Below, in pieces: positions 1,276 through 25,088 of a stretch of 64,000 nucleotides of DNA. The DNA is taken from the NCBI GenBank assembly GCA_013115145.1, contig JAAPAO010000035.1:1-64000 (forward strand), given 5' to 3'. This DNA is from Perkinsus chesapeaki ATCC PRA-425 (lineage: Eukaryota; Protista; Perkinsozoa). Position 1 is the first letter of the stretch. Every line of letters starts with the position of its first letter. Below the pieces are notes generated by a model. The model was not told where the DNA came from and ran no database searches. It saw only the letters and a list, made by a program, of their open reading frames with translations. Both the position numbers and the translations under genes were made by a program.

Positions 1276-1785
1276 ATGCACATCTGCAAGACCGTCGTAG
1301 TTCTCACTCTATCCGTGTGCGAGGGGCAGAGTCTGGCTAAGACCACTGAAGACCCGTTATTGGATGCCATTGAGAAAATGTTCAAGGGTTTCGTCGACGG
1401 AACAACGACTAGTCCGAGTTCTGACCACTCGGATGGAGAGAACAGCTTCTTCGACGGCATCAATCTCGATCTCTTCACTCAAAGGCCCTCAACCACGTTA
1501 GATGCTGTCGCTTCCAGTCCGGCACCATCAACATCCAACTCTTTCGGCGGTCTCACTATCGACCCAACGGAAGCGGTTGCAACCCCAGGATTAAGCATCG
1601 TGACAAAACAGGAGATTCTTGAAGATTACACCAGTCTCCTTGTTGCTATACTCATAGTCTTGATCTTAATCCTGGCTATTTTGGTGCTGCAATTGGTTTT
1701 GCCGAAATGTATGACTGGAAAAAGGTCAGAGGCCGCCGATGATCTAGAAGAGAATGCGGGGACAGTTAGCAGTTGTAGAGCATAA
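1276..1785 (+). CDS. mucin-like single-pass surface protein, family copy A (apparently intronless)
   Basis: Hydrophobic N-terminus, SFFDGINLD and FGGLTIDP motifs, S/T/P-rich linkers, DY-TM(LVLQL) and DLEE tail. Confidence 0.8.
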   Translation: MHICKTVVVLTLSVCEGQSLAKTTEDPLLDAIEKMFKGFVDGTTTSPSSDHSDGENSFFDGINLDLFTQRPSTTLDAVASSPAPSTSNSFGGLTIDPTEAVATPGLSIVTKQEILEDYTSLLVAILIVLILILAILVLQLVLPKCMTGKRSEAADDLEENAGTVSSCRA

Positions 1786-2399
1786 AACATGTATATTACA
1801 TGATGTAATGCTGACGTGACGTTAATAACGTCAACCGGCTTTACTATAATTAAGAACATGAAAAACGGCCCGATTATTTTTTGCTGGATCCCCTTGTATC
1901 GCGTTGAGCTTTTTGAGTCTCCATTAGGACCTCCAAGATGTTATCCCCTGAGCTAATGTAGCTGTTGGTTGCCAGTACTACTGGCCCGGTAGCACCCGTG
2001 ACGTCTAAGACATCACTGCTTCCATGATATGGTCACACATGATATGAAACACCAGTAGTTCCTCTCATCGAGGGCCCCGAGTCAGGACTCCCGATACGAC
2101 TCGTGCGTGGCGTGCAATACGCAAATAAAATGGTTACGCAACGAATGGAGCTGCTGGCCTGCTATCAGCAGTACCAGTCAGTCCTACAAATCTCAAGTCC
2201 GAGTTCTGCAGCACAGGTGGCCTGAACACCCTACTTCTCATGACGCTGAAAGTTCCAACCTGAGACACAACGAGAACAGTGTGAGAAACTACTTTTGTCA
2301 TACACTAAGAGAAAGATGAGTATTATATCTGATAATTTAATTATCATCATTATCTTGCAGAGCATAAAGCAAACTGTTGCTCGCATGATATCGTTTGTT

Positions 2400-3812
2400 T
2401 CACGTTCGCACTAAAGGCTCGAATGTACCTGCCGAACCATCCTGCAGGGTTGGTACAGGTCTGAACCACGAAGATGGGTCCACAAGAGCCGACGGGCTAG
2501 ATGATAAGCGCGCCCAATCGGTATTAGTGAGTCTAATACTGCTCACCGCCAAGACCAATGAGAACTCTTTTACTGTAGTCATGTTAGCATACTGGGTTAA
2601 GTCCATGTTATCATACATGCCTCGCTTATGCGCCAGCTTAGCAAATATACCTTCGGTTTGCCAGCAATGGACATGCTTAATCCGGTCGGTCGAAGCCCGC
2701 TCATCACTATGAGAGAATTCATCAAGATTGCCGAATCCCTCACCAGACTTCACAACATTACCGATATGATTCAATGCCACATGACCGCTGTACAAGGAGG
2801 TAACGGGCCAGTGCCAATGAGGCCAGCTCAAAGTTGACGCGCAGCACTTCTCGTACTCCGAGAACTCTTGCGTGAGTAACCACCGCGCTACCGATACACT
2901 CAGTCGAGCAGCTGCTCGGACCAGGCGGAACTCTCCAAACCAGGTGCTGCCAAAATTGTGCTTGTCGAAGTCGTTCCGAAGTTCCAGAGTGGCCGACACA
3001 TACGGCAGATGCCGTGCAGTATTCTCGATCATATAGCCCCCCGTTCCAGCGATGAGATTAACCTCTTGTGGTAGCGTCCAATTGTAAAAGCCTGGCATCA
3101 GGAAAACGTCGGCATCCGTTCTCAGTGCACTATCATAAATGTAACCGTCGTACTCGGCCATAGATAATATGCTATTCATATAGGCAGCATACCCCATGAG
3201 AGGATCCTCAGGTTCACCGATCGGTGTGCTTCTCGACTCGATAGGCGTGTAAGGAGCAATGACGCAGCTCGACGGGCCCCAATCGTTATGGCGGGGTTGA
3301 GTTTTACACCCAAGGCTTACAGCGAGATCGGAACCAGCTAGCTCGGTTAGAACGACGAGATCCGTTTTCAGTGTAGCCGGCTCGTGTGCCACCGCCAGGA
3401 GCCATGAAAGGTATAGAGCCTTGAACTCACGGGTGAAACCTTCAACCTTATCAGCCGGGAGACACACAAACACTCCGCGAACGTGAATGTGCGACTTGTT
3501 GCGCCCTTGCGCTAGAACTTCAAGTACAGAATCCACCTCCAGGGCCATTTCGTGAGTTTCGGCCTTCAGTCGGGCCCGTCCCTGGGGAGTCTTCCAGTAG
3601 GCCTCACTCCCGATAATCTCCCAGATGGGTCGAGACGTAGCCGTGGCATAAGTGAGCGAATTGTTGGTCTCAATGGAATGACGAAAACTTCTAGAAGGAA
3701 CCAGGAACGGTTTTCGTTTTAGATCATCATAGTGCAGGTGTGGCCACATGCCGAATTGCAAGCCCAAAAGGATGATTCCAGCGGTCACCGTAAAGACTGT
3801 TAGAACCACCAT
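2400..3812 (-). CDS. type II membrane protein with DxD motif, glycosyltransferase-like, function unknown
   Basis: Uninterrupted 470-aa ORF with an N-terminal hydrophobic anchor, LRTDADVFL, FGSTWFG, WPHWHWPV.SLY.GH.ALNH and HVHCW. Confidence 0.7.
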   Translation of the reverse strand: MVVLTVFTVTAGIILLGLQFGMWPHLHYDDLKRKPFLVPSRSFRHSIETNNSLTYATATSRPIWEIIGSEAYWKTPQGRARLKAETHEMALEVDSVLEVLAQGRNKSHIHVRGVFVCLPADKVEGFTREFKALYLSWLLAVAHEPATLKTDLVVLTELAGSDLAVSLGCKTQPRHNDWGPSSCVIAPYTPIESRSTPIGEPEDPLMGYAAYMNSILSMAEYDGYIYDSALRTDADVFLMPGFYNWTLPQEVNLIAGTGGYMIENTARHLPYVSATLELRNDFDKHNFGSTWFGEFRLVRAAARLSVSVARWLLTQEFSEYEKCCASTLSWPHWHWPVTSLYSGHVALNHIGNVVKSGEGFGNLDEFSHSDERASTDRIKHVHCWQTEGIFAKLAHKRGMYDNMDLTQYANMTTVKEFSLVLAVSSIRLTNTDWARLSSSPSALVDPSSWFRPVPTLQDGSAGTFEPLVRT

Positions 3813-4236
3813 TAAAATAAAAAACTGTCAACAGTAGCTACCCGCACTTCAAAAACTTTCGGGACTAGAAGCAATAACAGTGCTGCACTGCCAGTGCTAC
3901 AGCAGCACGCCCCCTCATAAGATGCCCAGAAAGCAATTCAGCCATGGACATTCCGAATCGAGATTCGAAATTTTCGTTATCAGGCGAAAATCTCAATAAT
4001 TCACTCGCCCACAACACAGCCAATGCGCGTACCTCAGGCGCAGTACCACAGCTGCTATGCCAGATGCTTGGCTACCCAACAATATTTGTTAAATGCGATC
4101 TCGAACTCGACACCCATGGTAAAAGAATCACCACTACACAGAACGATACTCCACTGGGTTGGGAGCGATTTGAAGCTATCAATGCTATTTCAGCAGCGGT
4201 AAACAATGACTTTGAGCAGGGCAGCAGCGTCTATAT

Positions 4237-5765
4237 CTAATTCTGATCACGGCTCTTAACACAGCAAGGAGCGTGGCTTTCGTCTTCAACGACTTTCACC
4301 TGAAAGAAAGTGTTCCGATGGATGCGGCCACCATGGCCAAGCCACGTCGAACTTACAATCTCGGTATGGTCGGCCTCGGGACCCAATTTAGCCTCGGCCT
4401 CATTGACCAGTTTCATGGCCAACTCCGACATAGGATTATAAACTCCTTCGCCCTGAATAAAGGTTACGTAAGATAATACACTTGCTGATATACCCGCTAA
4501 TGCTAGTGACTTACCTCCATAAGGCGCAGCGCATTGGCAACATCCTTCTGGAGACCGGCCATGTTGAAGCCGTAATCGAACTTCCCTGGAACGAACAAGT
4601 TGCTGCTCAGCAAATAACGAGCAGGTTATTATTACGTGTCAAAATATTCTTGGGAAAACGTCCCTGGAGTACAAAAGTGCGCCCGCTAGAGGTATCGATG
4701 GCATCTAGAGCAGCCTGGACGTCAACTCCAGCCTTAGCCAGGGTAACCATTGCCTCCGAGCCCATCAATAAGTTTGCTGCCAGAAGTGCATTATTTATGG
4801 ACTGAAATATGAAATCAGAATGGATTAATAGAGGATTGCCCTACTTTAACAGCGTGGCCACTGCCAACAGGCCCCAGCCCAAAAACATGACCGCCAGGCG
4901 CGCCAGACCAGCAGTTTATCAAACGGCGAACGCCTGAAAGTCCTCACATGCATGCATGTACCGATTCTCCCGACGTCACACCTGATTCTTGGTCGTCCAC
5001 AAGAGACGGGTCCTGCGACCCCACCATTGACGTTAAAACACCTGCCTTCGCTCCCTGGCATCCACGTAATTGTCACAATTGGCAATGTAATAACGTGTCT
5101 TACATGTGGTCCTCCGCTAACAGCGCAATCAGTAAAAACTGTTTCCCGTCGAGCAGCACTATCCTGCGCAGACACTGTGGAAAGCCTCTCTGCGACGGCT
5201 TTGGTGAGAGGTGGGTAGCCGCTTGTACAGTCAACCCAGTACAGCTTCGGACCTTGAACAGAAAGCATGGACTCCGTGCTTCGTGCGCAGTAGAGTAGTT
5301 TCACGTGCGTTCTCCTTGTGTGGTGCTTCAAGCATAGTAGGATCCTTAACAATTGTGTCCGCTAATTGCGACACTTCGTTGGATGTCGGCACGCAGGTTA
5401 CCATATAGAGGGACGATACCGACCGGTTCGCCTGATTGAAGGAAACGATGCGGTCAACTGCGGCTTGCCTTGCATAGTCGCGAGTACCTCTAGCCACGAT
5501 CGTATCGAAGGTACTGGCTTGGTATCAAAGCCTACGTCCTCAGAGGCTTTAGTAGCACGATCGATACCACTTGTCGAAAAAATATTAACACGATGCCTGA
5601 TCACAAGTGAGGAATGTCAAGACGGAACAGGCGAACGGAGATACGATGCTACCCAGCAGCGGCAATACGACGACAGAGGGGAAGTCCAAGTTTCCCCAGA
5701 CCAATCATTAACACATTTAGCGGCTTGGCACCAGAAGCGGCCGCAACGGAGCTGACTGAGGACAT
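4237..5765 (-). CDS. beta-hydroxyacid (3-hydroxyisobutyrate-like) dehydrogenase, multi-exon
   Basis: Exons read on the minus strand: NVLMIGLGKLGLPLCRRIAAAG (Rossmann), WVDCTSG, FTDCAVSGGP, GPVGSGHAVK|SINNALLAANLLMGSEAMVTLAKAGVD...SSGR, GFNMAGLQKD and LGPEADHTEI. Confidence 0.85.
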
Positions 5766-6099
5766 GAACAAAGAGGAAAGTTAAGAAACCTTAAATGAAC
5801 TCCCGAAAAGAGAGAACCCCGATACTTCCAAGTTAAGAGAATTGGAGTCTGCAACATCAAGAGCCACACGCCAAACCCAACTGACATATTATTCACTGGA
5901 AGGACATATCACTGGAAGGTTTTTCAATTGCGACGTCAATCTCCATTTCTTTGGGGTCTTCTCTTTATGGGCTCACAATAAGCAAGAGCACTCAGTTACT
6001 ACGACCCGTGTTCAATGTACTACAAAACTCGACAGTTACTTGATACGTACGGTGATCTAGAAACGTAAAAAGCTGGTAGGTCATCGATTGTGTAGCCTT

Positions 6100-7759
6100 C
6101 TATTCATCTTTCTTATCGGCGCTTTCCTCTTCTTCGTCTTCATCGTCATCATCCTCGTCGTCACCCTCATGGACATCAACTTCGATGTCCTCGAGAATCT
6201 TCTCGATCAGGGCCTTGGTATCTTTGGGAGCGTCGGCGGGCTTGGCGATCTTCTCAATCATCCACACGGCGAGTGTCTCATTCTCGGCCAAGGCTTGCAT
6301 GAGGATCTCGTTGATGTCGCCTAGTTCGGCCATATCAATTTCATCACCCTCTTGCAGCTCAGCATTTTCGCCTTCTTCGGCAGTATCACCTAACGCCCCG
6401 AAACACAGAATTCGCTATCAAATTCATATCAGATTTGTTACCCTCAGGGGCGTTGTCGTCCGTTGCGGCTTTCTCCACCGTCTCTTTCTGAGGAGCTGCT
6501 TCTGTCTCTTCCTGGCCTTCTTCTTCCTCCTCATCCTCATCATCAATATCAGGTAGTTCAATATCATCCCCACCATCATCTAGTACATGGCATGAAATCT
6601 TGTACGAAACATCGTCGGCTCCGGACAGCAAACCAGGTAAAATAGTCTCCCTCAAGACCTACAATAGCATGGTGGCAACGTCTATGGACAAAAGATGTCA
6701 CCTTCACTCCGGATTCCTCGAATGGGCCAAACATTGTGCTCCAGACCAGCTGACCGCCGACCTTCAGGGCCTCTCCTTCGGCCTTGCACAACTTCTGGAC
6801 ATGTTCAGCGCCGGTCTCATCAGCAAGGAGACCATCGATAGTCGCCTTATCAAGGAACATATCGACCTCACCTGACAAACAGCAGTCCTTTCCCGTCACT
6901 AAATTTCATCCAAAAGAGAGAGAGGGTCCGGCCCTCGGGGCCTTTCACTTTGTCCACTGACTCCAGAAATCGTGCGTGTGCTAATCCACATCGGAGTATG
7001 TGGAACATACCCGGAAATGCTCACCTGGCTTGACTATCTCGGGGCACATCTCGGCAGCCTCCTTATTGTGATACTCCACATCTTTGAAGTGTTCCTTGCA
7101 CAGCTCAATAGCGCTGGGGGAGTAGTCGAGACCAACCAAGCGACCAGTATATCCAGCATCGCGCATTGACTTGAGAAACGATGACACCTATGGACAGAGC
7201 CTATGAACTTGGGGAATGTTTGCAGACTCAACATTATAAAGCTGATGTACGTGTGGATTGTCTTCAATATAGTTACGCTGCTGTAGCCTCTAGTCAAGCA
7301 GCAGCAAGACATTGACTACAATTCATAATGAATAATTCATTAAAATATCCTCGAAAAATGTTATTCGGAAACAGCCAAAAGGACAAATGTAACCACCTAC
7401 TCCGCATCCTATGTCAACCACGGTGATGTCTTTTTTCTCAGGCAAAAGCTCCTTCATAGCCTCAAAACTGAAATGCCACTCGTCGGTAGAATCGGCATCA
7501 TCATCTTCAGCGGCATCCTCTTTATCTGATAGCAAATCTCTGACCAGCTCCATAAGACCCGACTGCCATTACTGGCCTTCTTTTCATCGTTAGTTCCCTC
7601 GTCGGTAAGCCTTTGTTTTTTTGCCTTATAACGCTTCTCCCAATAGCTAGCATCGCCATAGTGACGGAAGTCCTTCTCGCCGTCCTCATCGGCATCAGCA
7701 ATCTCATGAGCTGCTCGCTTCTTACTACCCGTTTCGGTGGCGGATGGGGTGACAGTCAT
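6100..7759 (-). CDS. class I SAM methyltransferase (EFM4/METTL13/EEF1AKMT4-like) with acidic C-terminal extension, multi-exon
   Basis: YGDASYWEKRY, DEWHFSFEAMKELL, VVDIGCG, GLDYSPSAI and FLDKATID. A 38-nt GT-AG intron (7563-7526) joins the first two frames. Confidence 0.8.
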
Positions 7760-8357
7760 TAGAGACGGGGCGAAGGGAAGAACTGATCGAAATAAATGCA
7801 AGAGTGGAAGACTTTAAAATCCTAGCTAGCACGAGTCCGGCTACACTGAAATAACGAACGTACTGCCACAACCTACGGCAGCCGTCGTTGTACACAGTCT
7901 TCAGAGTTCTGGCGAATTCGGGTATTTTTTTGACATGCTTGAATATGTGTGGTGGCATGGCCGCCGGAAGCCTTCGCCCTGATCTTAGATTAGTGATGAA
8001 TCATCACTGATGATCACTGATTGATCTTATAGAAAGAAGTCATTACAAACGATTTAATACGGAAAGGTGGCTTGCCATAAGTCCGCAGGTGATACAGTAC
8101 CCTCATGAAGCAGATCTGGGGAGATAATCACCGAATTTACCGAAGGGGCAATCGCTAGCTCTTCAGCCAATATACTCGAGGAGTTTTCAAGCAGGTACCA
8201 AAGGCCGCATAAGGACTGAGAGAACGACAGCCTCTCGTACGTATGAACCCTAAACCAACGATCGTGACTTTGCCTCGTGCTCTGCTTCTGGACGTTACAC
8301 GCCAAGACGGTGGTGTCACGGTGTCATAACAGCTGCCGCGTCGTGCGACACATCCGA

Positions 8358-8404
8358 TTTTCGTGCAAGTTTCCTGCATTTAGGCAAAAAAGGCGTCGAC
8401 GACC
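8358..8404 (+). promoter_or_regulatory. conserved upstream module TTCGTGCA-N7-TGCATTTAGG...GTCGACGACC
   Basis: Recurs upstream of the surface-protein paralogs. Function is inferred only. Confidence 0.45.
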
Positions 8405-8479
8405 GCTGGTCGTAGGAATGGGCACTAGTCGAGGTAACAGCTGGTTTTCTCAGATATAATTGGTTTATCTGATCGTAGA

Positions 8480-8569
8480 ATGAAGTTCTCCACTATACTC
8501 TGCGCTCCCTGCATTGCTTTCTGTGGCGCATGGTTTGAAGGCCTGTCTGTCGAAGCCTTCGACTCATAG
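8480..8569 (+). pseudogene. truncated surface-protein paralog (signal peptide plus first motif only)
   Basis: MKFSTILCAPCIAFCGAWFEGLSVEAFDS* matches the family start (e.g. LCVPSGAFFEDLHVED). It has the same upstream module and an AG acceptor at 8453. Confidence 0.6.
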
Positions 8570-8616
8570 GAGAATTCACTGCTTTACAGGGAATACCCAC
8601 CACTGGATTAGATAAT

Positions 8617-8860
8617 GTAATTTAAATAAAGTACTGTATTAAATCCAGTGCTTTATTTAAATTACCCAAAGTTTGGGTCATTATTCGGGATTATTTGGGT
8701 CAAGCCATTTAATATATAGTTTGGGTCCCAAACTATATATAATATATAATATAATATATAATATAACATATTAATATATAATATATTAAATATCATACAT
8801 AAGAATCTCATGATAAAATATATCACTTAGCTAATAAAAAAATAAATTCGTGAATAAATA
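8617..8860. repeat. AT-rich island with two hairpins
   Basis: 20-bp inverted repeat at 8617-8636/8646-8665 (one mismatch), perfect 14-bp inverted repeat at 8712-8725/8727-8740, then an (ATATA)n tract. Confidence 0.8.
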
Positions 8861-8965
8861 CACTAAATACCCATGACTTGAATTGTTGGGGCCGAATGCT
8901 ATCTCATCCGGTTCGAGGAAAGCCTTTCCCGAAAAGGTATACTCCCGCCAGGGCTCGCGCAGGGA

Positions 8966-8991
8966 TTTCGTGCAACTAACATGCAATTAGG
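8966..8991 (+). promoter_or_regulatory. conserved upstream TGCA module (copy B)
   Basis: TTTCGTGCAACTAACATGCAATTAGG, about 135 nt before ATG 9128. Confidence 0.45.
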
Positions 8992-9127
8992 TCACTTTTT
9001 CCGCGACCGCAGGCGCGGCGGTCGCGGTCGGGAGGATTTGTGGAGCTTGCACTCAGTGCAATGCACTGCGCAACTGTGGTTGGTCCTTGAAGCGAACATT
9101 TTCAGCTATTTAAAAGCCTATATTGTT

Positions 9128-9707
9128 ATGATTAGACAAGCTATCCTTCTCATTCTCTGCGTGCCTTCAGGGGCATTCTTCGAAGATTTGCATGTTGAAG
9201 ACTCAAGTGCGCTTGCCGGGTTGAACTTGGACGATGCTTCTTCGGCGACAAGCCCGAGGCCACTTGGTACACTCAAGCTCGGCACAGCAGTTACTCCGCG
9301 GCCGGGCTTATTCGAGGAATTGGCGATCGAGTCTATTCTCACGACAAGTACGGCCTCACATGTGGTGGATGAAGGCGAAGACACTGCAGCCCCAGGAATG
9401 AGCAACAGCTCTAAGCAAATGGAGAGCCCTAACTTAGGTGGACCTAGGGACTACCATGTGGTCCTAACTGCCTTACTTATCATTACCTCATTAGTCTGGG
9501 TAGTAGGCATGTTGCAGCTATGGGCCCTGATGAAGCTTGCTTCGGCTGCCCATCGGGAAAGGATAATTACAGACTTGGAGCAGGGGTAATAGCGATTATC
9601 TTGCCACTCCATGGCGGACACGCTTTAGTCTGAGTCATTTTAGGCATACGCTCGAGAAAGGGAGCATCAACTTCGACAATGAAGAAAATGCCGGAGTCGG
9701 CTCATAA
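9128..9707 (+). CDS. surface protein copy B (exons 9128-9585, 9644-9707; 173 aa)
   Basis: Signal peptide, FFEDLHVED and GLFEELAIES motifs, DY-TM(GMLQL), DLEQG. A phase-2 intron keeps the frame to GHTLEKG...GVGS*. Confidence 0.85.
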
Positions 9708-10547
9708 TTAAACAAACGATATTAGTATTATCATATTACACGTCAACGACGTGACGTCATGGCCGGGAAATGATGACCCTGACGCTGTGCCATAAGTAGT
9801 GGTGTCTGATAAAATCATCAATCCGGTTTTGTGTTAATATTAGTTCGATTCAAAACATGCCCACACTGTGCGTCGTAAAACAATACTTAGGATGTCCCAG
9901 CCTGGCTGTCTAGCTAACCCGAAGAGCAGAACAATGAGACAATCACCCGCGGACGAACTTCACAAAGCGGATAAAGTTAGTAGTCCGATTGGGACTTCCG
10001 ATGGACGAGTACCACTGGGAATACCTCTTGTTATAATATTATGAAAACGATGGGAACGTCGCAGAGTTCTTCCTCTACCTGTTGATCCAAAATCTGTATA
10101 ACAACACACTAGCTTGAGGGAGTCAGCGCCGCGAGGCTCTCAGAGGCTCTGAAGCAGAGCCTGGCTCTGACCTACTACTTGCAGCTCAATGTACTCATCC
10201 GCTGTGATATACTGTGAAACTTCAAGTTTCCAACTTGCCAAGCTCAGCTTGGTCCAAAGCGTACACAACATTAGAAATCCCAAGTCTTATGTAACAGTTA
10301 CATAACAGTTACATTGTAACTTACCAGGAGGAAAGCTGAAGTTAAATCACGGTTTCCAGTCAGCTCACTCGTGCCTCTGAAGCACGGGGTGACGAGTTTG
10401 TGAGAAATGCCCTATGAGATTTGTGAGACTTCATCGTTCTATCGTACTTGTACGTACCAGAATACTCCGGGAGTATTACTCCCCCATTGAAATTTGATAC
10501 TTCCCACGAAATTTAACGGTTAAATTTTAACCGGTGCCCCTATTCAG

Positions 10548-10890
10548 TAGTCAAGCAGCAGGGTAGTGACTATCATAGACTTCAGAGTGATGTTACTCGG
10601 CAACACGTGTCAAAAGGACAAATGTAACCACCTACCCCGCATCCTATGTCAACCACGGTGATGCACTTTTCTCAGGCAAAAGCTCCTCCATAGCCTCAAA
10701 ACTGGAATGCCACTCGTCATTAGAATAAGCATCATAGTCTTCAGCGGCATACTCTTCATCTGACAGTAAATCTGCGACCAGCTCCATGTAAGCCGACTGC
10801 CATTGCTGGCCTTCTCCTCATCGTTATTTCCCTAGTCGGTAAGCATTTGCTTCTTCGTCCTATAACGCTTCTCCCAATAGCTAGCGCCTC
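10548..10890 (-). pseudogene. pseudogene fragment of the methyltransferase at 6100-7759
   Basis: Clear nucleotide match to 7291-7657, with an in-frame TAG (MLTD*G) and a 1-nt deletion before ITVVDIGCG. The 38-nt intron is retained. Confidence 0.9.
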
Positions 10891-11329
10891 CATATAGTAC
10901 TGTATACGATTGTATATGTACGACCGCCCTTTATAAGCCGAGCGGCCGACGGCCTCATCTAATAGAAACAAGGGCCTTGTTACAAGGCACGACTAACAAA
11001 TGGGTACCACTCAGACAAGTGACCTGACCCTAGCGAGCAGAGAATGCAGTGGCCTCATAGTATAGATAAGAACCAGATTAAGAGTCTCTTAATAAGAGAC
11101 ACAATCGCCGATTCTACCGGAGGGACAATTGCTAGTTCCTCACTGAGGAGTCCTCAGCCATTATTCGTATAAGAGGCGAGATCAGGATACGGGGAACGAC
11201 AACTGTTTACCCATAGCGTTTTCCCAGTGAAGGCTAAACCCACGAACGAGGGTGCTTCATATTCAACCTCCGGACACGTCGTGCCCCATACGACACTCGA
11301 CAGCTGTCGCACGCGGGCGACACGTCCGA

Positions 11330-11356
11330 TTTTCATGCAAATTACCTGCATTTAGG
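11330..11356 (+). promoter_or_regulatory. conserved upstream TGCA module (copy C)
   Basis: TTTTCATGCAAATTACCTGCATTTAGG. The flank 11110-11360 resembles 8140-8390. Confidence 0.45.
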
Positions 11357-11524
11357 CCAATGTCCGCAGCATTCTGCGATCAACGCAGATTAATCCCTAA
11401 AGAGAGTCGTGGCAAATAGGTAGCCCCATTCTTGGAAGAGCTATGTTTCATATTATGAAATTCATAAGCACTGTTCCATTGAGCAACGTGCTTTCAGCTT
11501 CATTAGTTTTAATACTATATTGAT

Positions 11525-12113
11525 ATGTGGTGCGTAACTGCCATCCTTCTGGCTTACCTCTCCAAAGGGGTGGCTGACTTTTTTAGTAGCTTTTCTGTCG
11601 AGGATCCTAGCACACTCGAGAATTTGGCGCTTACCGGGCCTTCTCCCACCCAAAGCCCGCCCATCGATAACACCGGCTTCTTTGATAGCATCACTGTCGA
11701 GAGCGCCCTCCCAGAGTATCCGGCCCTGCATGATAGGGAAAGTTCAACTACGACTGCGATGCTTGAAGTTGAGAGCTCTACCCCGTCAAGCCCGGGAAAA
11801 TTGGAAGGCGCGGCTCAACAGATAGGCGACCCGCTGAACCCGTCCGAGGTTAATCAAGACTACAATGGTATTATCAGTGCAGTGTTAGCCATCTGTGGTA
11901 TCACGTTGATGGTTGGGCTGTTGCAGCTGCTAATCTTGAAAAAGATTGCTCTGGGAGTATCACAATTGCAGCAAGCCGCGGATGTGGAACAAGGGTAAGT
12001 ATGAAGCCCGTTAAAACGTTAGTGTTCACATGCTCATTTCCATCTTCAGGTACAGGTTGAGCAAGGGGAAGACTAGTGATGGCGAAGACGTGGCGATGGG
12101 CAGCCTATCATAG
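11525..12113 (+). CDS. surface protein copy C (exons 11525-11994, 12050-12113; 177 aa)
   Basis: Signal peptide, FFSSFSVEDPS and GFFDSITVES motifs, DY-TM(GLLQL), DVEQG|YRLSKG...GSLS*. Confidence 0.85.
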
Positions 12114-12585
12114 GCTCCTGAAAGATAAGACGCTTTGTGCAGCATGACCAATCTGAGTTGTACCGATTAAACTAAGGGCCTTAGGTCTAAGGCTATTGTG
12201 CTGCGTTTCAAGTTGTTTAATAAACAGTTTATTGTGGTAAGGCTATTCCTCTCAACTCAGAAGTTCCAAGCTAGTACCAAACTGGTGGTGCAGCATAATG
12301 CTACCAGCATATTACTGGCGCCACCAGAGCCCATTTGGTTATTTCAAAGCATACATTGTATACTATACAGTGTATAGTATACACCCCTCCATGTGATTTT
12401 AGCATAATCGGTTTTTCCCACGTATCTGTGCTGTACATAAGTGTTTGAGTCTATCCTTCACAGTGTGAAGTTCACACAGGGTTATGACAATACTAGTCTA
12501 CCATAAGTTATAGTATAGGTTATAGTTATAGGTGTATATTAGTCATATTAAGTATAGTTATAGTATATGTACTAGGTCTTCGTGA

Positions 12586-12944
12586 CGAAGCGGCGGAGCT
12601 CGTTCAGCTGTTATTTTGCTCGTTGTTAGTTCGTCATCACACGCGTAGTGCTTTGGAGGTCCGAGCGAGTGATCAAATCGCGCGGAAACGATTTAGAGAA
12701 GAAGTCGTGGGTTCAAATCCCACATGCCACATTTTTCCGTCAAATAATGTTTTTGCTTTTTCACTCGACACACGGGGTAGCTTTGAAAAAATTACAAATT
12801 TTCTAGGCATCCCCAGAGGAAGAGGAGTCTTTTCGTCTATAGATCATCAGCTAGTTCGCTCTGGTTAACGAGAAATAATTCGTACGCACGCACGCACGCA
12901 TGGCGAAATGCTCCATTTCCAGATAATAAGCTCCGCTCGCTTCG
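12586..12944. mobile_element. small non-autonomous element (MITE/HINE/SINE-like) with inverted ends, tRNA-like T-arm and (ACGC)n microsatellite
   Basis: CGAAGCGGCGGAGCT (12586-12600) and AGCTCCGCTCGCTTCG (12929-12944) are inverted repeats with one extra base. GTGGG-TTCAAAT-CCCAC lies at 12707-12723 and (ACGC)4 near 12884-12899. The flanks are TATAG-rich. Confidence 0.5.
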
Positions 12945-15900
12945 CTCGCTCCGCAACTTATAGGTTATAGTCTGTAACCTCAAAGGTCCAGGTCTTAACT
13001 TATTAGCTTCAGCTTAGCTGGAAGCCTAAGCAGGGTCAGACGGTCCCGTCTGTCACCAGATAATTTGAAAGCCTTGATGGTCTTACGATCGTGAGTTGGA
13101 CGCTTGTTGAACTCTCCGTGTTCGCTGTGGCAGTTTTTGTGTTTCTGAGTATAAACATGTTGCATTTAGTCAAATTTGAGTATGGTGTAGTGTTGCGAGT
13201 AGAAACCGTTAGCCTTAATCCGTATTGAGCCGTATCGTAAAAAGTTACGAGATCGTAAGTCGTACCGTAACCGTAATCATAATCGTAAAGACGCCCATGT
13301 CTAGGCTCAGAGCTCAGTCCAGGGTGGCAATGCAACAACAGTTGCTAGCTAAGCTAGCCTAACTGGTGTTTGTTGATGATAAACTGTAAAAGCCAACCTC
13401 TCCTCGCTGTGTATGTTCCTACCAATAGTACTGCTACTGCTGCCTCTCGACGGTGACTCACTATTGATGAGGAAACGAGTCTGATGATAATCATTGCTCT
13501 GCGGAGGTTGAGCTTCTACTAGCTCACCGCGCGCATTACGTACTACCATATATGGTCATTGCGGCTAGTAGGACCAGTTGCCAGTCCTTGCCAGCAAAAG
13601 CAGGTCTATAGACACTTTCGCTTGCACGCTTTTTCTTCATGCGTGTTGTATGGCAAGCTACAGTTGACTTTTGGTCAATAACCACCCGGATGAGTATCCC
13701 GGTCAGACCATCTCTCGTCTACTCAGTACTACTCCCAATCTAAATAGTAATCTTGCGTTGAACTATTAACGGACAAATATGCGGTATCCACGGCTGCGGC
13801 TGCCGCAGTCAAAACCTAAACTATTCAATGCGTAAGGAATATGCTGTATCCAAAAGAAGGTACGAATCTACTGGCAGAGATTACGACGGAATCGCGGTAT
13901 AACTGAAAACATCGGTAGTGCTCATATCCTTGGAACTCGCCGTAAGTAACTTGCATACTAAAGCGAGTAATTTTAGTGAATCATGACACGCGATGCCAGC
14001 ACGCGCCACTACAAGCGACTGTTAGAAGATGCGCTGGAAATATTAATAGTGAGAAAGAAGGTATATCAAACGGAGATTTCGTAACGGAGTCCATAATGTA
14101 TTTCATATCATACGGCCGCAGCGAGAAATTCTCACATTTATTCCCCGTGCCGTAAAAAAACAGTGACGACTACCGTAGTAGCTCTATGACATATAGCACT
14201 GGAGATTTCATGAGCAATGAGACTCATTGAACAAGTTACTGCCAATAACGACATAGCGCAGGTAGGAACTTTGTCAAGAGCTATCACGGTGGGAAGCGTG
14301 CACGCGGCGCGAAGCACGCCGCTCCCTCGAGTTTACGAAAGACCCAGCTTATCAACACACGCATCCGCCGGTGAGTATCAAGAAATAAAGAGACCGTCTG
14401 GACTGAAGTAGTGCTAAAAGACTGATCGAACGTAACCTTTACGTTTGGGTTTAAGCCAAGTTCACGTTGAGTTCACAGCTCCAGACTGAGTCAGATATAG
14501 CTGCACAACGAATCGTTGTCAATGACGAAACCGACTCCCACTCACATTAGCATACGCGTATTATGGATACAACATCATCCATGAGGTGGCTCATCGATTG
14601 CTTCTCGCTTTTGTAGCAGCAGTCTTGCAAGCAGCTTGAAGCAAGTTGCCGCGGTCACCGGAAGAAAGACGGTCTTTCAAATACCATAAGATCGCAAAAG
14701 CTGCTGCTGCTGCCAGCTATTGAATACCGCATTACTCAACATGGTAGAAGCAAGCATTTAACTACCCAAGAAGTAAATACCCAAGTCAGAAGAATAACAC
14801 GAGCCCAGTTGTTGGAAAGTTTTCAATTTAAGAGTACTTGTCAACATGACGGGGGATCCGCGTGGCGTCTGGTTAGTCTCGTGCCCGGAGGGCCGAATGA
14901 CCTCGGAGGTCACGTCAATTAAACTGACACAAATACCTGCCTGCCTGTAACTCATGCTGCCTGCTAAACTGCTGCTCATCGGTGCTGCAGATGTTGGGCC
15001 TGCCACATACAGGAAACAAATCTATTAAACCCGACGCGTTCTTTATCATCGACTTAAGAGGCGACTTTACTAATGGTAAGATAGAAAGGTTGTAGAAGAA
15101 GGCAATAACTAGAGACTTGCGAAGAATAAGAGAAGCTTGCTTAACGAAAGTGACACAAAGCCCTGCACACGAAACGTCTGGAGCTCGACGTCGATCCGAC
15201 CAACTCGCTATTAGCGATAAGCTATGCTATAGAACTGCCTGATAAATGAAAACCTCATTGCCGTCATAGGCATCGCACCCGGGCAGAATCCCTGTCGCGG
15301 AAAGAAGTATTTTGAAATTGGAAGTTGAAATAGACACAATCTTGACCAATTTAAAATCAGAAGACATGGAAACAACTCCATCGAGTCAACGCAACTAACA
15401 CAAACTCATTAGATTGAAAATGAGGATCAGTAAATAGTATTTACTACACGTCAACATGGGTCGTGTTGTTCAATACATGCAACTGTCTATTCCTTGTGGC
15501 TGTAACTCGTCGGACTTGTGCACAATACCTGTAGGCGACCTGCTCCATAACAGAACATAGCATGATATACATAGCACATCCAAGAAAATATAACTATTAT
15601 AGTTATACGCAGACTGAATAAGGTTGGAGATTGATGAAAACGATGTCGAGAGTATTTCCAAGTAAGGGTTCCTTGCCAAGGTAAAACGTGCAAAACATTT
15701 GACAGGCTTCTCAATCTGAAGAATACAGCCTACAACTTCACAACAACGTTTTCCGGTTTTAGTGGACTCTATCAACTAGAGGGGGGGGGTTCCGTCAAGT
15801 TGCTTCATCAAAGGTTATAAGACAGAAAGCCGACAATACTTTTTATCACTATGATAATACAGTCTGCATTGTTTAATAGGATTCGTAATTTGTATCGTCA

Positions 15901-16271
15901 TTATCGAATCAAGAGTAAGTACATATTATGCTTTATAGAGCTATAACCTACACAAGCAATATCTTTGAACATGTCAGGATGACGGGATGACAATTCTCTG
16001 GTGAATCTAATCGTTAGACTCTAATGGCCAGATCTAAGAGCTGGAGTCCAAGAAGCAGTGCTGGTCAATGCAGTTAATACTAAATTATCCAATGCCGCCG
16101 AATAGCACTTCATTCAAGACTTTTTCGCCTGGTACTGTCACTATGACAGTGTCATAGCACAGATTATGCTGCACAACAAACCGGAATTCAAGACGACATG
16201 CGATCAAGATCAGAGACGCAAAAAAAAGACTCAACTCAAGCACAATTTGCGCCGCACAATGTGGAAGAAAA

Positions 16272-16318
16272 ATGCATGCATTTCGTGCACTTGGGCGAGA
16301 ATAGAGTGGTCGGCGACC
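16272..16318 (+). promoter_or_regulatory. conserved upstream TGCA module (copy D)
   Basis: ATGCATGCATTTCGTGCACTTGGG followed by GTCGGCGACC at 16309-16318. Confidence 0.45.
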
Positions 16319-16438
16319 GTCGCTTATCGGAAGTTGGAATTATAAGGACTACGAGGTTTGATGCTCAACATAAAATGTTCTAGGTCGTAGACTTGGTTTC
16401 TCAGCTATTGTACTCCATTGGTGTAACACCAAGTTAAC

Positions 16439-17291
16439 ATGATTAACATCGCAATCCATTTAACAGTTTTAATATATATTATATGTTTCCCTGGCAATGG
16501 GATGGATTTTTTGAGTGACATAAGCATTGAAGATCCGAGCACCCTTGATGACTTGTACTTGGATGACACGCCTACGATACCGATTCCGGATACTACAGTC
16601 GGAATCAGTCCAAACACTGGTTCTACACCTCAGCCTGGCCTCTTCGACCATTTGACTATCGAAAGCCCCTTTCCATGGTTCAGCCAACCTGGTGGTGCTG
16701 CGCCCGAGTATCCTTCCACCAGGTTCAACCTCTTTGACGGTGTGGTGCTCGAGAACCTGACCACAGCAGCACCAGGTCTGTTTGATGGCCTATATATCGA
16801 AGATCCTCGCTCAGGCGACACCAGCCCCATCGAAGATATGGCACTGAAGAATGGTTTTTCAGAAGATGTGAGCACTGAGAGCCTCTCTACAACTCACCCT
16901 ACCAGCGTTGCATATGCACCTACACCTACGGTTGTCCGAGACCCATCGGGTGAGATCAAACCCGACCTAGTAGCGGTATCCGCTACTAGGAGCCATCTGG
17001 GAACCTCTAATGATTACTCTATTATCCTAGTAGTTGTGGTGGTAATCCTGGGGCTACTGCAATTGGTGGGGTTATTGCAGACGTGGATACTGCAGAGAAG
17101 CTTGCGTGAGTCAACACAAGTGAAATGCACCAAGGACTTGGAGCAGAGGTACAACTGAAACCGTCAAGGGTTCTGAGTTTATTGTCTTTCTCCATTTCAG
17201 GTATATCCGTGATAAAACGGCGGATCTAGAAACCGGCTGCAAAGAAGATATCATCGCGGAAGACTCCACTGGGAATATGGGTGGCAAGTAA
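16439..17291 (+). CDS. surface protein copy D (exons 16439-17148, 17201-17291; 266 aa)
   Basis: Signal peptide, four motif copies (FLSDISIEDP, GLFDHLTIESP, LFDGVVLEN, GLFDGLYIEDP), DY-TM(GLLQT), DLEQR|YIRDKTADLETG...GGK*. Confidence 0.85.
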
Positions 17292-18744
17292 AAGAATTAC
17301 TTAATCCTACCACGAAGCCATGACAATGTGATGTCCACACTGATTCGCTGAAGAGGCATATCCCGCGTTCATAGTAATGAATAGTTATCAATCGAGATGG
17401 TCTGACCATCATGGTCAGTGCAATACGAATTGGCTGTACCAGCTCGGGTGTGAAAGTCATCCGCGCATATTATGACATTGCCTAGTTACCTTTCTACATG
17501 TGCCGGTGAATCTCCAGAACCACGAGATTTCGACAGGCTGACCTAATTTCTACTGCACCTTGCAGTGACTGCACTGCGCTTCGCGTATAACATATGCGCA
17601 GTGAGGAATTGTTACCAGGAATATCACGCGGCCTGCCAACTAAAGATTTCGCGGCATACGAGTCCCGTACACCGCACTCGATTCACGAATAATTCGTGAA
17701 TTGAACTATTCTTGAAATTATAATTATTAATGAAAAATTATTTTTGAGCCATGGCAAACAATCCGACAAACTCGCCGGGCCGGCTGTCATGCCGCTTGCC
17801 ATGATGGAAATCCGAATTAATCAATTAAATATAGAGCGCCGACAGCCGGAATCTGCGGAAGTGGGAATATCTTTATATTGATTACTGTTATTAGTTTACG
17901 ATTATTTGATTATTAGTTACGAGTGGAGTAAGGTACCACCTTGAAGCTCTCGCCGAGCGATTTCTAATACTGGGTCGCCCACTGCGCCCATTCGAATTGG
18001 GCTCTGAGTAATGGTTTAACAAAGAAATCGTTACATAGAGAAGTGAGAATTTACGAGTTTTCGGAATGCTATTTCAACAGTTTCTCGCCGTTTTTTCGCG
18101 AGATGTGCCTACAGTAGGCAGCCTACTGTACATGCAAAACAGAGTAACACAAACGTCACAGCCGCTGTGGGCCATAGCCTGTGGCATCGAGACTGTGCCA
18201 CAGCGCTGGTGGTATAATAAATGTATCTACATCTTCGTCGAGCAGCCTGCTCGGAGCAGGGTATAGTTTTGGTTCGATCTGCAGAGGGTCGTGACTCATG
18301 ACTCTTGAGTTCGATTCCCAATTGCAACTCCCAACTTACAACGGTAGTTCCTTGTTACACATCTTTCCACGAGCCTAGCGCTAATGCGTGCTTTCGTGTG
18401 TTTTTGCACGTGCATTAGCGTGAAAAAACGCTGTGTTTTGCGCGTGTAGCGTCTCAATGGCATTAAGACAAGAATTAGATTCTACGACTTATTATTGGGT
18501 TTATATGAAGCGTTTACGACTCATTTAGAGGATTCTAGCGTTAGCCAACCGCGGTCAGCCCTATTACGACTGGGCTGCTGAGATAGGGAAGTTCCCTAAG
18601 GTAACGTCGGGTTTAACTTGGTCAGCTTTGTGACTATCCATCAGATCGAGTCCATCTTCTCAGCTAGCCTCTCTACTTCCCCTCCAAGCGGGCGTGCGAA
18701 CGTTTAACTGTATATTTCTTGCAACGCTCCACGCGCGACCGCGC

Positions 18745-18796
18745 ATTCGTGCAGTTTTCGTGCATTTAGGTGAAATGTCCACAAGAGTCGGCGACC
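18745..18796 (+). promoter_or_regulatory. conserved upstream TGCA module (copy E)
   Basis: ATTCGTGCAGTTTTCGTGCATTTAGG followed by GTCGGCGACC at 18787-18796. Confidence 0.45.
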
Positions 18797-18873
18797 ACCG
18801 GAAAACTACCTTTAGGCGATATAAGGACATTAGACTAGATGAGACTATTTCAGTTAAAATCCGAAACCTTAAC

Positions 18874-19420
18874 ATGTGGTCTTTGCTTGCAATGTCTTGT
18901 GCCTACGCCTTTCTGGGTGAGGCCAGCTTCTTTGACGGCGTCACTGTCGAAGACCCGAGTAGCCTCGCTCAGCTGCAGCTGGAAGTCTCTTCCGCAACTG
19001 ATCCAGTCAACTCTGGAAGGCCCACTACACCGAGGCCAGGTCTCTTCGATAGCATGGCTATCCATATTCCTGATGAGACCAATCCAGCTGATGACACGAG
19101 CACGACCACGCCTGCGTTCGATGCACCCAGAATGAGCAATGAACGGGGCCAGTCTGGGTTTTACCAGGACTACACCGGAATCCTCATTGTTCTGGTCATC
19201 ATCGTTGGGTTACTCTTGGCAGTGGGGCTATTGCAGTTTTGGATGTTGAGGAAGATCGCTATCGGATCCCATCTAAAACGAGCTACAGACTTGGAACAAG
19301 GGTAAGAGATAATTGGCGAAGTTTCCTCTGAATGAATTAGGTTTGAGATTTATTTTCAGATACCAAGTAGGCAAGGGAGCTGGGGCGGAAACTCACTCAG
19401 AGGCCGTCATAGGACAATAG
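18874..19420 (+). CDS. surface protein copy E (exons 18874-19301, 19360-19420; 162 aa)
   Basis: Signal peptide, SFFDGVTVEDPS and GLFDSMAIHIP motifs, DY-TM(GLLQF), DLEQG|YQVGKG...IGQ*. Confidence 0.85.
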
Positions 19421-20956
19421 GTCACAGATTTTATGTCCGATTACATGATAACTGTTGTACTGGTTAATATAAGTGGTAGGAACCGTGTCTAGTTTTGAGA
19501 ATTGTCAATTACAGTGTAGTTATTGCACAACGTATACTACGCTCGAAGGTTTTCACTGGAAGCTACATTAAGTGTAGTACATGTAATTTTCTGAAACCGG
19601 AAGATTTCTGGTTGGTTGACGTTAGTGGAGAGAAAATTTCCCTAAGAAATAGAGACACAACGGCACAATTTGGCACTGGGTGACCCAGTCTGGGTCAACA
19701 GCACGCAGTGCCAGAACACCTAATAGGCGTCCAGTAACTGGACCCCAGTAGGCTCTGTATTGGCATCCGGAGCAAGCACTGGCGGTGACCGGCACAACTG
19801 TTCAATGGCGGCGCGCACCGCGCGCCGCGCATTATTCCTTTCGCAATATGGAGGAATTCGGCGGCAATCTTTGGCTTCTTTGAAGCAAACCTGCTCCTGA
19901 GAGGGCTACTTCAACTCAGAATCTATATAATATCTTTAGGGAAATAATTCTATATTCTAGTTTCAGTATCGCTCTCACACTAGGACTCGGACCATGGCGG
20001 CGGTCGGTTCGAGCCTCTACCTTTCGTCTCTTGTGCACTGAGCATGCACAAAGCGCTTCTCGAACGTCTTGCTAGTGACCGTTTCGTGACTACTACACTT
20101 CCGACTGAGTTACACATTTGCTTTATCACTCTTACATTGTCATAATTGCTCCTTAATATGGGCCCTCATGTCCTACAGTAATTCTCGTTCTGCTTTGATT
20201 TCAAGTCAATTTTTATTTCTCCTTCCACATTGCCACCCTTAATTACTGACGGTAATTGACCGCGATGCAAGGACAGTAGAGCAATAAATTGCGATAATGA
20301 ACACAGCGTGCTAGATGAATACGATGAATAATTTTATTCATATAATATATGACTATATAATAATATAAATATTATTCAACTACACTCACAGAGAGTGATG
20401 ATTGCATGCTACCGAGGGATAGATGAGCACATTCCTAGCTATTCCCGAACATCACTTCTATACCGTATAGTCCCTCAGAGTATATACGGCCAGCACAAGT
20501 AATACCTGATCCCTTTATTTTCACGAAATTTTAGTCCGCAGAGCTACCCCGCACAGATTACTGATGAAATGTTCCCGTATGCCTGGTATACGCGTCTCCA
20601 GGAAGAGATGGCAGTTGCCAGCCGTCACCACTTAGAACCTAGAGGCCAAATGTAACGAATGGCAACCGCAGCGGCTGCACGACCACGTTATAACTACTAC
20701 GTCATATACTAAGTTAACCATATTCTAGTTGGTAATCAGGCTCGAGTGGGAATGGCCCAACTCCCGGCTTCGCTCATCAGAGAGTAGTTCCCATACCCCA
20801 CGCTCGCGCGTATCCCCCCAAATGCCACAGCCCATGCAAAAGGCAGAGCGTCACGGCTAGGTCGTTCGCGTAAGAACGAATTTCCTACAGATGCGATCGA
20901 CTGACTTTTACGAACTGCCTAGGAGCAAGAAATATACTGATACCTTCCAACCGGTA

Positions 20957-21110
20957 ACTACCTCCTTATCGGTGAGAACATGAACAACACCATCCCAACC
21001 CAAGAGATAATCACGATCGAAGTGAAAACCGATGATTGGCCAAGGACCTGAGGACCAGATATATGCGTGATTGAACGGCAGACCCAGAAACCTACTGCAA
21101 AGATGTCATC
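20957..21110 (-). pseudogene. degenerate proteasome beta-3 (PSMB3) fragment
   Basis: 20957-21052 aligns with PSMB3 23981-24077. It reads VLGQ then (1-nt deletion) FDRDYLLGWDGVVHVLTDKE, against IDRDCLSGWGGVVYILTDKE. Confidence 0.8.
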
Positions 21111-22193
21111 GTGGCAGACTCCACTTTGAGTACGGGTGGCAACTTGCCACTGGCAAGCAAACGAATTGCTTAATTCTGCCAAGAAGCCACGACACCGTTT
21201 TGTACCTTATAATGAGGAAATAAAACAACATCAAGAATATGACGATTATACACCATGATCACATTGACCTTTCCATTGTGAACTAACCAGTTCAAATTTT
21301 CACATTTCAACTTTCAGTTGCTGAAGTCTGTTGAAGTTAGATTATTGATATCAAAACGTTCAGTAGATATACGTAGGAAACTTACCAAACCGTCGGGTAA
21401 GGTCACATCGTGAACCGATTATTCGATTGGAAGCTTTAATAAAGCTACTCAAATACTAAAAACTCAGGAAATATCATTAAAATAATCCATTTCATATGTT
21501 CAAGGAATGCCTAGCCCTGAGATAGTACTCCCGAAAATTTTCAAATCGTCTAAAGAGAAGGGATATGTTATTTTCTGCGTAAGGCGATAACAAATGTCTC
21601 CTCACCTTAGTTCCAACCATTTGAGGCTTGAGCGACTGAGGATGAGCTATCCATGGGGCGACTCGACGGGCTTCTTCGAATACACGTGGATGGGAAGAAT
21701 GTCGTCGTGATATGATCACCTGAAACTTAGTAGTCACATTTACGAAGAAATCATGGTAAATCTTATTGGTTCCAAGATCTATCGGGCCCGATCTGTAACT
21801 AGACACAACACAGGAAGCCTTTCTGAGGAAAACACTTATATGAACCAATCCATGCTAGCCCAAACAACAGGGGTACATGTGCCATATACATCCGCATCAC
21901 GTTCAGTGTGGCGCAGCTTCCTCCCTCCCGTTCAATTCTTGACCGTCAGATTTCGCGACTTTCCACTGAAATCTTCAGCTAGAATAACAAAAACCACATG
22001 AACATCATATAAGCACTCTCCTGCCGAGGACCTATCCAGAACAGGAACATGCGGACATATCAAATTGATAGGTCTCTCCATATTATATACTCTATATATT
22101 AGAATATATATTACTCTTAATATACTATATCTATATAATCTCTACATATCGATATTATCAATGTAACGCTGAAAGCCTGCCTATAGTTAGCGT

Positions 22194-22279
22194 GGCGAGT
22201 CGCGACTCGCCCATGCAGACTTCGTGCATTCATGCAAAATGCAAGACGCGCAGCAGTCTGCGATCAATGGTTGCCGACC
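22194..22279 (+). promoter_or_regulatory. 18-bp palindrome plus variant TGCA module (copy F)
   Basis: GGCGAGTCGCGACTCGCC (22194-22211), TTCGTGCATTCATGCAAAATGCA (22221-22243) and GTTGCCGACC (22270-22279). Confidence 0.4.
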
Positions 22280-22420
22280 ACCTTGGAAACTATTTGCAAA
22301 CGCTTGTATGGGAGCTCGAAGCAATAGTGAAACCTGGTTTTGTCAGATCTGGTTTTACCTAAGGGCTTCAAGATCAAACTCCTCTGTCTTAGCTATTTTA
22401 ATTCCACACCACTCTATAAA

Positions 22421-23136
22421 ATGCGGTTCACATATCCATTTTTCATGCCCTACCTCCTTGTCTGTGGGATGAGTTTTTTCGATCAAATCGAGATTGAAGC
22501 TCCTGATTCTCTACAAGAACTCCAGGCGTCGGAGCCAATGCCAACTTCAACACCAACCCCCAACAGTATGATCGGTCAAGACTCGCCCACAGGAACGCCT
22601 AGCTTCTTTCACTTATTTGCCGAAGGCTCGTTCACAACAGGGTCTCTGGAGCTCACAGATACTACGACAGCAAAGATGAGCTCACCTGGTGGAGTGAATG
22701 AGGAAAGAGGTCCTCCTACAACTCCTACAACCGGCATTTTCGATGGGCTCTCCATTGAGAGCCCATTTACTACAAGAGCCGGCCTGTTCGACGGCATAAC
22801 GTTGGATACTATCCCCACTTCAACTTCGGTATCGCCAAAGGAGATTCGGCCTGAAGGCACTCAGGCTCCGAGGATAAGAAGTCAGCTAAGACAACCAAGA
22901 GATGAACAGAGTTACTTCGGTTTATTAACTGCTCTTACAATAATCTCCGGATTTATTTTGCTGGTTCTGCTACTACAGCTTCTAAGCCTCAAGAAGATAG
23001 CGCTCAACACCCTACAGCCGGCAGATCAAAGGTAAGACGGCAATACCACAATTGATGCAGGAATTTAACTTGTTTCAGGTACAGGGTGAATACCGAAACT
23101 ATACCAGCCGCAGACATGCTGAAGATACGGTATTAG
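22421..23136 (+). CDS. surface protein copy F (exons 22421-23031, 23079-23136; 222 aa)
   Basis: Signal peptide, SFFDQIEIEAP, GIFDGLSIESP and GLFDGITLD motifs, SY-TM(LLLQL), ADQR|YRVNT...IRY*. Confidence 0.85.
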
Positions 23137-24861: not shown

Positions 24862-25088
24862 GTTGTTGAAAGAGTCTGCCAGAAAGATGAAAAACTCACT
24901 AACAGCAACAATAACCGCTACTCCCCATTCCTCCACTTAACGCAACACCCTCGAATCGGGTAGCAATGAAATTATATCAGTTGTGACAGCGGCGGCTTTC
25001 CAAACGTCTTGAGGTGCAGCAAGCGTTGCATGAGGGATCAAATTACACTAAGGCCTTCGCGCTCGGGCGGGCCAATACAAAATAAAGT

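Follow-up and report, generated by a model that had tools for sequence, protein, structure and literature searches.

A putative Perkinsus-restricted family of small, predicted single-pass membrane proteins with a repeated peptide motif, arrayed on a Perkinsus chesapeaki contig

Gene copies of the array

The window analyzed here, bases 1-64000 of the 115,623-bp Perkinsus chesapeaki contig JAAPAO010000035.1 (assembly GCA_013115145.1), carries on its plus strand an array of paralogous genes for small, predicted membrane proteins in which a short peptide motif recurs. The array consists of six intact copies (c1 and c3 to c7), one truncated copy (c2t) and one further decayed tail relic, as follows.

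1276-1785, plus strand: c1, intact, single exon, 169 aa, one motif clear, a second degenerate
8480-8569, plus strand: c2t, truncated copy of 29 aa (signal peptide and first motif), followed by a stop
9128-9585 and 9644-9707 (exons), plus strand: c3, 173 aa, 2 motifs
11525-11994 and 12050-12113 (exons), plus strand: c4, 177 aa, 2 motifs; GenBank model FOL47_006289 is identical
16439-17148 and 17201-17291 (exons), plus strand: c5, 266 aa, 4 motifs
18874-19301 and 19360-19420 (exons), plus strand: c6, 162 aa, 2 motifs
21042-21140, plus strand: eighth copy, decayed relic of a c5-like cytoplasmic tail, found by tblastn
22421-23031 and 23079-23136 (exons), plus strand: c7, 222 aa, 3 motifs and a degenerate one

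An initial annotation of this DNA had placed seven plus-strand copies here, six intact and one truncated. Open reading frames (ORFs) were found at all seven starts that it gave, and spliced models reproduced both the range of 162-266 aa for the intact proteins and the end of the array at 23136; its census holds for these copies and is incomplete, since it lacks the eighth, decayed fragment. The predicted gene ends of the intact copies match the public gene calls. A family hidden Markov model run over all six-frame ORFs retrieved no extra copy in the remaining 41 kb of the window. Alignments and a feature table bear out the further claim that these are paralogs of common architecture with wide divergence in sequence and length. 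The most divergent member of the array is c1, which has neither an intron nor the upstream TGCA module described below.

Two copies are in decay. In c2t, a remnant of the second motif lies downstream in a different frame, followed by AT-rich simple repeats at 8620-8802, and from its sequence we class this copy as a pseudogene. These repeats, with periods of 7, 12 and 17, lie directly 3' of c2t and are possibly the mark of the event that shortened it. One in-frame stop interrupts the relic at 21042-21140, which matches the c5 tail over 34 aa at 62% identity (E 4e-6). The relic is intronless, running unbroken over the exon 1/exon 2 joint of c5 with the junction exactly as in the splice model, which suggests a cDNA-mediated copy or an intron loss. 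It also adjoins an 84-nt segment (20937-21020) with 80% identity to 23961-24044, a stretch next to a Snf7/proteasome gene.

The repeated motif and the protein architecture

What defines the family is a core motif, G-[LF]-F-D-G-h-x-h-E-[DS]-P, which occurs one to four times in each intact copy. Over 19 family instances the consensus extends to (T-P-x-P/A)-G-[LF]-F-D-G-[ILV]-[ST]-[IV]-E-[DS]-P. The six intact proteins hold 14 strict matches; 5000 shuffles that preserved composition averaged 0.03 and never exceeded 2. In a six-frame regular-expression scan of the 64 kb, the core motif is confined to the family ORFs on the plus strand, the sole exception being a stray match at 1241-1264, shortly 5' of c1. 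The first motif copy starts 0-2 residues past the predicted signal-peptide cut, and behind this N-terminal copy lies a short S-x-L-x-x-L stretch, modeled by AlphaFold2 as a weak helix. Several known signals were considered as identities for the motif, namely, a clathrin box, an S-hydrophobic-x-E propeptide-cleavage site, PEXEL/TEXEL and RxLR, and were rejected for unfit spacing or for lying on the wrong side of the membrane.

Around the motif, all members are built alike. Signal peptide and topology were called by simple rules. Nine members show N-terminal hydrophobic cores of at least 9 residues within the first 23, with Kyte-Doolittle hydropathy (KD) of 1.7-3.2, and in 9/9 the allowed small residues at -3/-1, read from the sequence, adjoin the first motif. 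The ectodomain that follows is 69-171 residues long, has no cysteine and 0-1 N-glycosylation sequon, and is strongly acidic (Asp+Glu 14-22%, Lys+Arg 2-6%, isoelectric point [pI] about 4.05-4.3). Then come a D/S-Y dipeptide and a transmembrane helix in which a Gln close to the inner end is invariant. The 19-residue membrane segments have KD values of 2.4-3.6 and are followed directly by Lys/Arg, that is, a single helix with a positive C-terminal side. About a dozen residues past the helix, at the intron site, lies a D-L-E-Q/E-G patch, and behind it a variable tail. In total the tail spans 31-53 residues after the helix, basic next to the membrane and then acidic at D-L-E-Q-G, with pI values of 4.9-9.8 and no canonical Y-x-x-hydrophobic or [DE]-x-x-x-L-[LI] signal.

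The ectodomain is predicted to be disordered, with no modeled fold. AlphaFold2 run with the family alignment gave a mean predicted local distance difference test score (pLDDT) of 60, with residues 38-107 below 50; the sole confident part is the membrane/juxtamembrane helix at residues 113-164, where the membrane part reaches pLDDT of 82-94. For this same protein the ESM Atlas holds a model with a pLDDT of 0.57, whose structure neighbors, unrelated helical proteins with TM-scores below 0.5, were discarded. A glycosylphosphatidylinositol (GPI)-anchored surface antigen was rejected as well, since 31-53 partly charged residues lie beyond the hydrophobic segment, which is thus not at the C-terminal end.

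The proteins had been described as mucin-like, with Thr/Ser/Pro-rich linkers, a D/S-Y dipeptide before the membrane helix and a short acidic tail. Only the dipeptide and helix stand as described. The linkers are moderate in composition (ectodomain Ser+Thr 21-27%, Ser+Thr+Pro 29-39%), the tail ranges from acidic to basic pI, and tandem Pro/Thr/Ser repeats are absent from the ectodomains, which in most members of both species show just a run of 3-4 Thr about 25-30 residues ahead of the membrane. Mucin-like is thus a weak term that is only loosely true. The mucin-like glycoproteins of other parasites (TcMUC of Trypanosoma cruzi, those of Cryptosporidium, and the mucin-domain cyst-wall proteins of Toxoplasma) are mostly GPI anchored or secreted and carry dense Thr repeats. 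With them the family shares lineage restriction, local duplication, fast divergence and Thr-containing disordered regions; it differs in having a true membrane helix with a tail of 31-53 residues, Thr runs of only 3-4 residues, and few members, with eight intact genes known to date.

A closer architectural likeness is found in small animal membrane proteins. Glycophorin A (PF01102), podoplanin, syndecans (PF01034), TMEM154 and mucin-15 have a similar size, a signal peptide, a disordered, acidic, cysteine-free Ser/Thr/Pro ectodomain, one helix, a basic juxtamembrane region and a short tail. Podoplanin moreover repeats a short acidic peptide, E-D-x-x-V-T-P-G, as its ligand site. However, the Perkinsus proteins show no sequence homology to these small sialomucins (Pfam-A, E up to 1), have a lower Ser/Thr density, and carry an unrelated hydrophobic-acidic motif. 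The feature-based neighbors in the ESM Atlas, among them herpesvirus gG, TMEM154, glycophorin A, mucin-15 and syndecan, all score below 0.9 and are leads only. The top ones are herpesvirus envelope glycoprotein G and UL132-type proteins, type I membrane glycoproteins with mucin-like ectodomains; the likeness to gG is compositional and architectural only, its score of 0.87 being often reached by shuffled proteins, and it has no alignment support. A further resemblance is to the FFAT motif, E-F-F-D-A-x-E in an acidic tract, which is bound by VAP: F-F-D or F-F-E/S in acidic context occurs in 7/14 array motifs and 9/19 family instances. FFAT motifs act in the cytosol, whereas the family motif is predicted by the positive-inside rule to be lumenal or extracellular, and its acidic residue stands at position 8, not 7.

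Relatives, gene history, and array layout

Do these proteins belong to any known family? A Pfam-A hmmscan of the six proteins at E up to 1 gave no family, with only noise for c1 (DUF6594 and ODV-E18, E 0.2-0.3). A PDB profile search gave nothing beyond a chance-level, compositional match to the integrin beta-3 membrane helix (E 0.03). Nine proteins matched when 1.84 billion representative proteins were searched exhaustively with an HMMER profile, and six of these are the window's own copies. Two more, FOL47_003311 of P. chesapeaki (E 3e-12) and PMAR006881 of Perkinsus marinus (E 7e-7), are true relatives; the ninth, a bacterial 752-aa repeat protein (E 1e-4), was set aside as a low-complexity chance match. 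PMAR006869, found in a later search, shares 89% identity and a scaffold with PMAR006881, and PMAR027007 and two 57-aa partial models share a 90% cluster with PMAR006881. Word-based and exhaustive profile searches of proteins revealed no homolog in Perkinsus olseni, outside Perkinsus or in other alveolates, though unannotated genes would be missed by such searches. From these searches, the family appears to be Perkinsus restricted and to match no named family.

The absence of a named family agrees with the initial annotation, which had called the family unrecognized. In one sense it is not: all family members, the six intact genes included, are already deposited as "hypothetical protein." The guess that the DNA might come from P. 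marinus was right for the genus and wrong for the species, and P. marinus itself has at least two full-length homologs. In the literature searched, no paper mentions the P. marinus locus tags or accessions, and nothing relevant was found on proteomics or on Perkinsus O-glycosylation enzymes. The initial annotation also took the proteins to be O-glycosylated surface antigens or adhesins and, in the case of P. marinus, candidate carriers of the glycan ligand of oyster hemocyte galectins, roles that here are speculative. According to the review PMC7053492, Perkinsus trophozoites expose galactose/N-acetylgalactosamine, with work on the identity of the glycans in progress at that time; the review names no carrier protein.

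Several features are indirect evidence that these are real genes. Copies c3 to c7 share one phase-2 intron position, with predicted introns of 47-58 nt, and the same position is used by FOL47_003311 on another contig. At the donor these copies conserve …CAR-GG|GTAAG, or AG|GTA; the acceptor is rich in pyrimidines, and the second exon is short and open. Pairwise synonymous differences (pS) are 0.60-1.12 and thus saturated, whereas nonsynonymous ones (pN) are 0.27-0.79, usually below pS and with their minimum in the helix block. In all six copies the frame, of 162-266 codons, is open despite this saturation at synonymous sites, indicating old genes kept under selection. With synonymous sites saturated, dN/dS is not measurable, and no call is made on positive selection either way.

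The idea that these are nonfunctional chance or decaying ORFs, spread by duplication and picked up by gene predictors, is therefore highly improbable: two copies are plainly decayed, and low complexity and predicted disorder mark the proteins, but the long frames stay open with pN usually below pS, splice sites and phase are conserved, and motif, helix and tail patch persist across two species and three loci.

In the maximum-likelihood tree, c3 to c7 split from c1 and the other three members with support of 94/93, whereas the array as a whole is only weakly split from the rest (68/71), and branches are very long. A SUV3-type helicase gene is found about 10 kb or less from FOL47_003311, and likewise from PMAR006869, suggesting that the SUV3-linked locus may be ancestral. 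Compared with the array copies, the genes of P. marinus and of the second P. chesapeaki locus contain an additional ectodomain intron (L002 10001-10566, L005 10001-10584 and L003 10001-10646), and the tail intron in P. marinus sits about 3 codons downstream of the P. chesapeaki position.

Four of the six deposited models look faulty. FOL47_006288, the model of c3, splices away 19 residues, among them the D-Y dipeptide and the outer portion of the membrane helix. The GenBank models of c5, c6 and c7 begin at an internal Met and lose 21, 6 and 8 N-terminal residues, respectively, leaving that of c5 without its signal-peptide core.

The copies lie 0.6-6.7 kb apart, and most of them share an upstream module. 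The form TGCA-N7-TGCA-W-T-Y-R occurs 5 times in the window compared to 0.17 expected, always on the plus strand and 116-207 nt 5' of the ATG of c2t, c3, c4, c6 and c7. In most copies a second box, TC-K-R-CGA-Y-C, follows 30-45 nt after the module. The upstream modules are located as follows.

8364-8405, plus strand: module of c2t (TGCA-N7-TGCA-W-T-Y-A, 8364-8382), then a TCGACGACC-type box
8971-8989, plus strand: module of c3
11336-11382, plus strand: module of c4 (TGCA pair 11336-11354)
16273-16319, plus strand: variant module of c5 (variant 16273-16290), with other TGCA spacing and the second box present
18750-18797, plus strand: module of c6 (TGCA pair 18750-18768)
22214-22266, plus strand: module of c7 (TGCA pair 22214-22232)

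The exact TGCA-N7-TGCA form is found neither before c1 nor at the two loci outside the array. In apicomplexans, TGCATGCA-type sites are bound by ApiAP2 factors. The common promoter module of c3 to c7 and c2t suggests that these copies may be co-regulated.

Self-comparison of the window revealed only small shared flanks: the 84-nt pair at 20937/23961, the promoter module, and a 305-nt copy. In the last, 10590-10894 upstream of c4 matches 7358-7660 at 86% and is a pseudo-copy of the first exon of a minus-strand methyltransferase gene. Its place relative to c4 mirrors that of the real exon ahead of c2t, and it would be the trace of an old segmental duplication. A recent segmental duplication for c2t and c4 was rejected, the alignment being limited to the 305-nt flank and the promoter module. 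On this pattern, the array probably expanded by old local duplications.

Unrelated minus-strand genes lie only at the array ends, and the window's other features near the array are the following.

21-845, plus strand: ORF at the contig start with a weak integrase-core (rve) match (E 0.047)
between c1 and c2t, minus strand: DUF7164, NAD-binding dehydrogenase and methyltransferase genes
23896-25995, minus strand: Snf7/proteasome gene model, after c7

The ORF at 21-845 is probably a retroelement remnant. The array copies had been called the only clear plus-strand host genes in the first 27 kb, which agrees with the public gene calls apart from this integrase-like ORF. The public Snf7/proteasome model assigns a Snf7 and a Proteasome Pfam domain to a single 425-aa product and may merge two neighboring genes. 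From 29118 onward on the plus strand, a 1406-aa public model joins AAA_11/AAA_12 helicase domains with Glyco_hydro_20, either an unusual fusion or a merged model.

Topology, location, and possible function

Taken together, we favor, with a probability of roughly 0.6, the reading that these genes encode small type I single-pass membrane proteins of about 150-270 aa, a family confined to Perkinsus, and that the repeated peptide is shown on a disordered acidic stalk. The proteins would be routed into the secretory pathway and expose the part with the motifs to the outside or to a lumen. By analogy with glycophorin, podoplanin and syndecan, the stalk might present the peptide as a docking or self-association site, while the conserved helix and the juxtamembrane patch could serve partner binding or sorting. 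The likeliest location would be the plasma membrane beneath the cell wall.

Several points weigh against this picture. The signal-peptide and topology calls come from simple rules rather than a trained predictor; c6 has a weak hydrophobic core (KD 1.70); and the start codons chosen for c5, c6 and c7 disagree with the GenBank models. Classical mucin domains exceed the Ser+Thr content of 21-27% seen here, and sequons number just 0-1. None of the known ligand motifs matches the family motif, so that "docking site" is an analogy. Finally, a type I protein may equally well sit in an internal compartment.

This last point leads to the strongest competitor, which we regard as possible though clearly the less likely of the two: the proteins reside in or cycle through internal secretory or endolysosomal compartments (Golgi, trophozoite vacuole or zoospore secretory organelles), the motif being a lumenal sorting or escort signal and the helix with D-L-E-Q-G a cytoplasmic trafficking signal. 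The best-conserved parts are indeed the helix, the juxtamembrane region and the D-L-E-Q/E-G patch rather than the ectodomain, which suits signals that face cellular machinery. The first motif lies at the predicted mature N terminus, the site of propeptide-type sorting signals, and the proteins are too short to reach through the cell wall. However, up to four internal motif repeats would be unusual for an N-terminal sorting signal, the tails lack both canonical signals searched for, and a fast-evolving ectodomain of variable copy number better suits an exposed protein.

A bolder extension of the stalk reading, which we hold to be unlikely, makes the motif an undescribed extracellular short linear motif that docks Perkinsus cells to a partner, be it a bivalve host receptor, a lectin-independent binding protein or a component of their own wall. 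The six divergent, co-regulated copies of P. chesapeaki versus two or three near-identical ones in P. marinus would then reflect adaptation to another and wider range of clam hosts.

Less probable still is a membrane-tethered precursor, cleaved to free the repeated peptide or the whole ectodomain as a signaling peptide or a wall/matrix component. A conserved unit set between Pro/Gly-bounded variable linkers, with one to four units per protein, resembles such a precursor, yet no dibasic or other recognizable processing sites lie beside the units, and the conserved helix and tail would be needless in a mere precursor.

There is scarcely any room for a bipartite plastid-type leader, in which a signal peptide is followed by an aromatic residue at +1, as in red-derived plastid lineages, with the relic plastid envelope as target. 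F-F, F-L, W-F or L-F does stand 0-2 residues past the predicted cut in all members except c1, and the class I leader of dinoflagellates, a Ser/Thr-rich region followed by a hydrophobic stop-transfer segment, has a superficially similar layout. But the region after the signal peptide is strongly acidic, its excess of Asp+Glu (14-22%) over Lys+Arg (2-6%) being the opposite of transit peptides; the aromatic motif repeats internally; and the 31-53 residues after the helix leave no candidate mature plastid protein.

The stalk-bearing type I membrane protein thus remains our preferred reading, and on present evidence it amounts to a new genus-restricted family of a familiar protein kind and is not a surprise. 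Small orphan membrane-protein families are common in protist genomes, and the array is a lead rather than a discovery. It is also a compact example of a shared TGCA-pair promoter module with which co-regulation in Perkinsozoa could be approached. A P. marinus homolog could be tagged by existing transfection and CRISPR methods (PMC8062965). Perkinsus parasites cause major losses of oysters and clams, their entry into hemocytes depends on surface recognition, and their membrane and surface proteins are barely characterized; for them the family provides a defined, genus-restricted set of candidate exposed proteins with an unusually clear conserved peptide.

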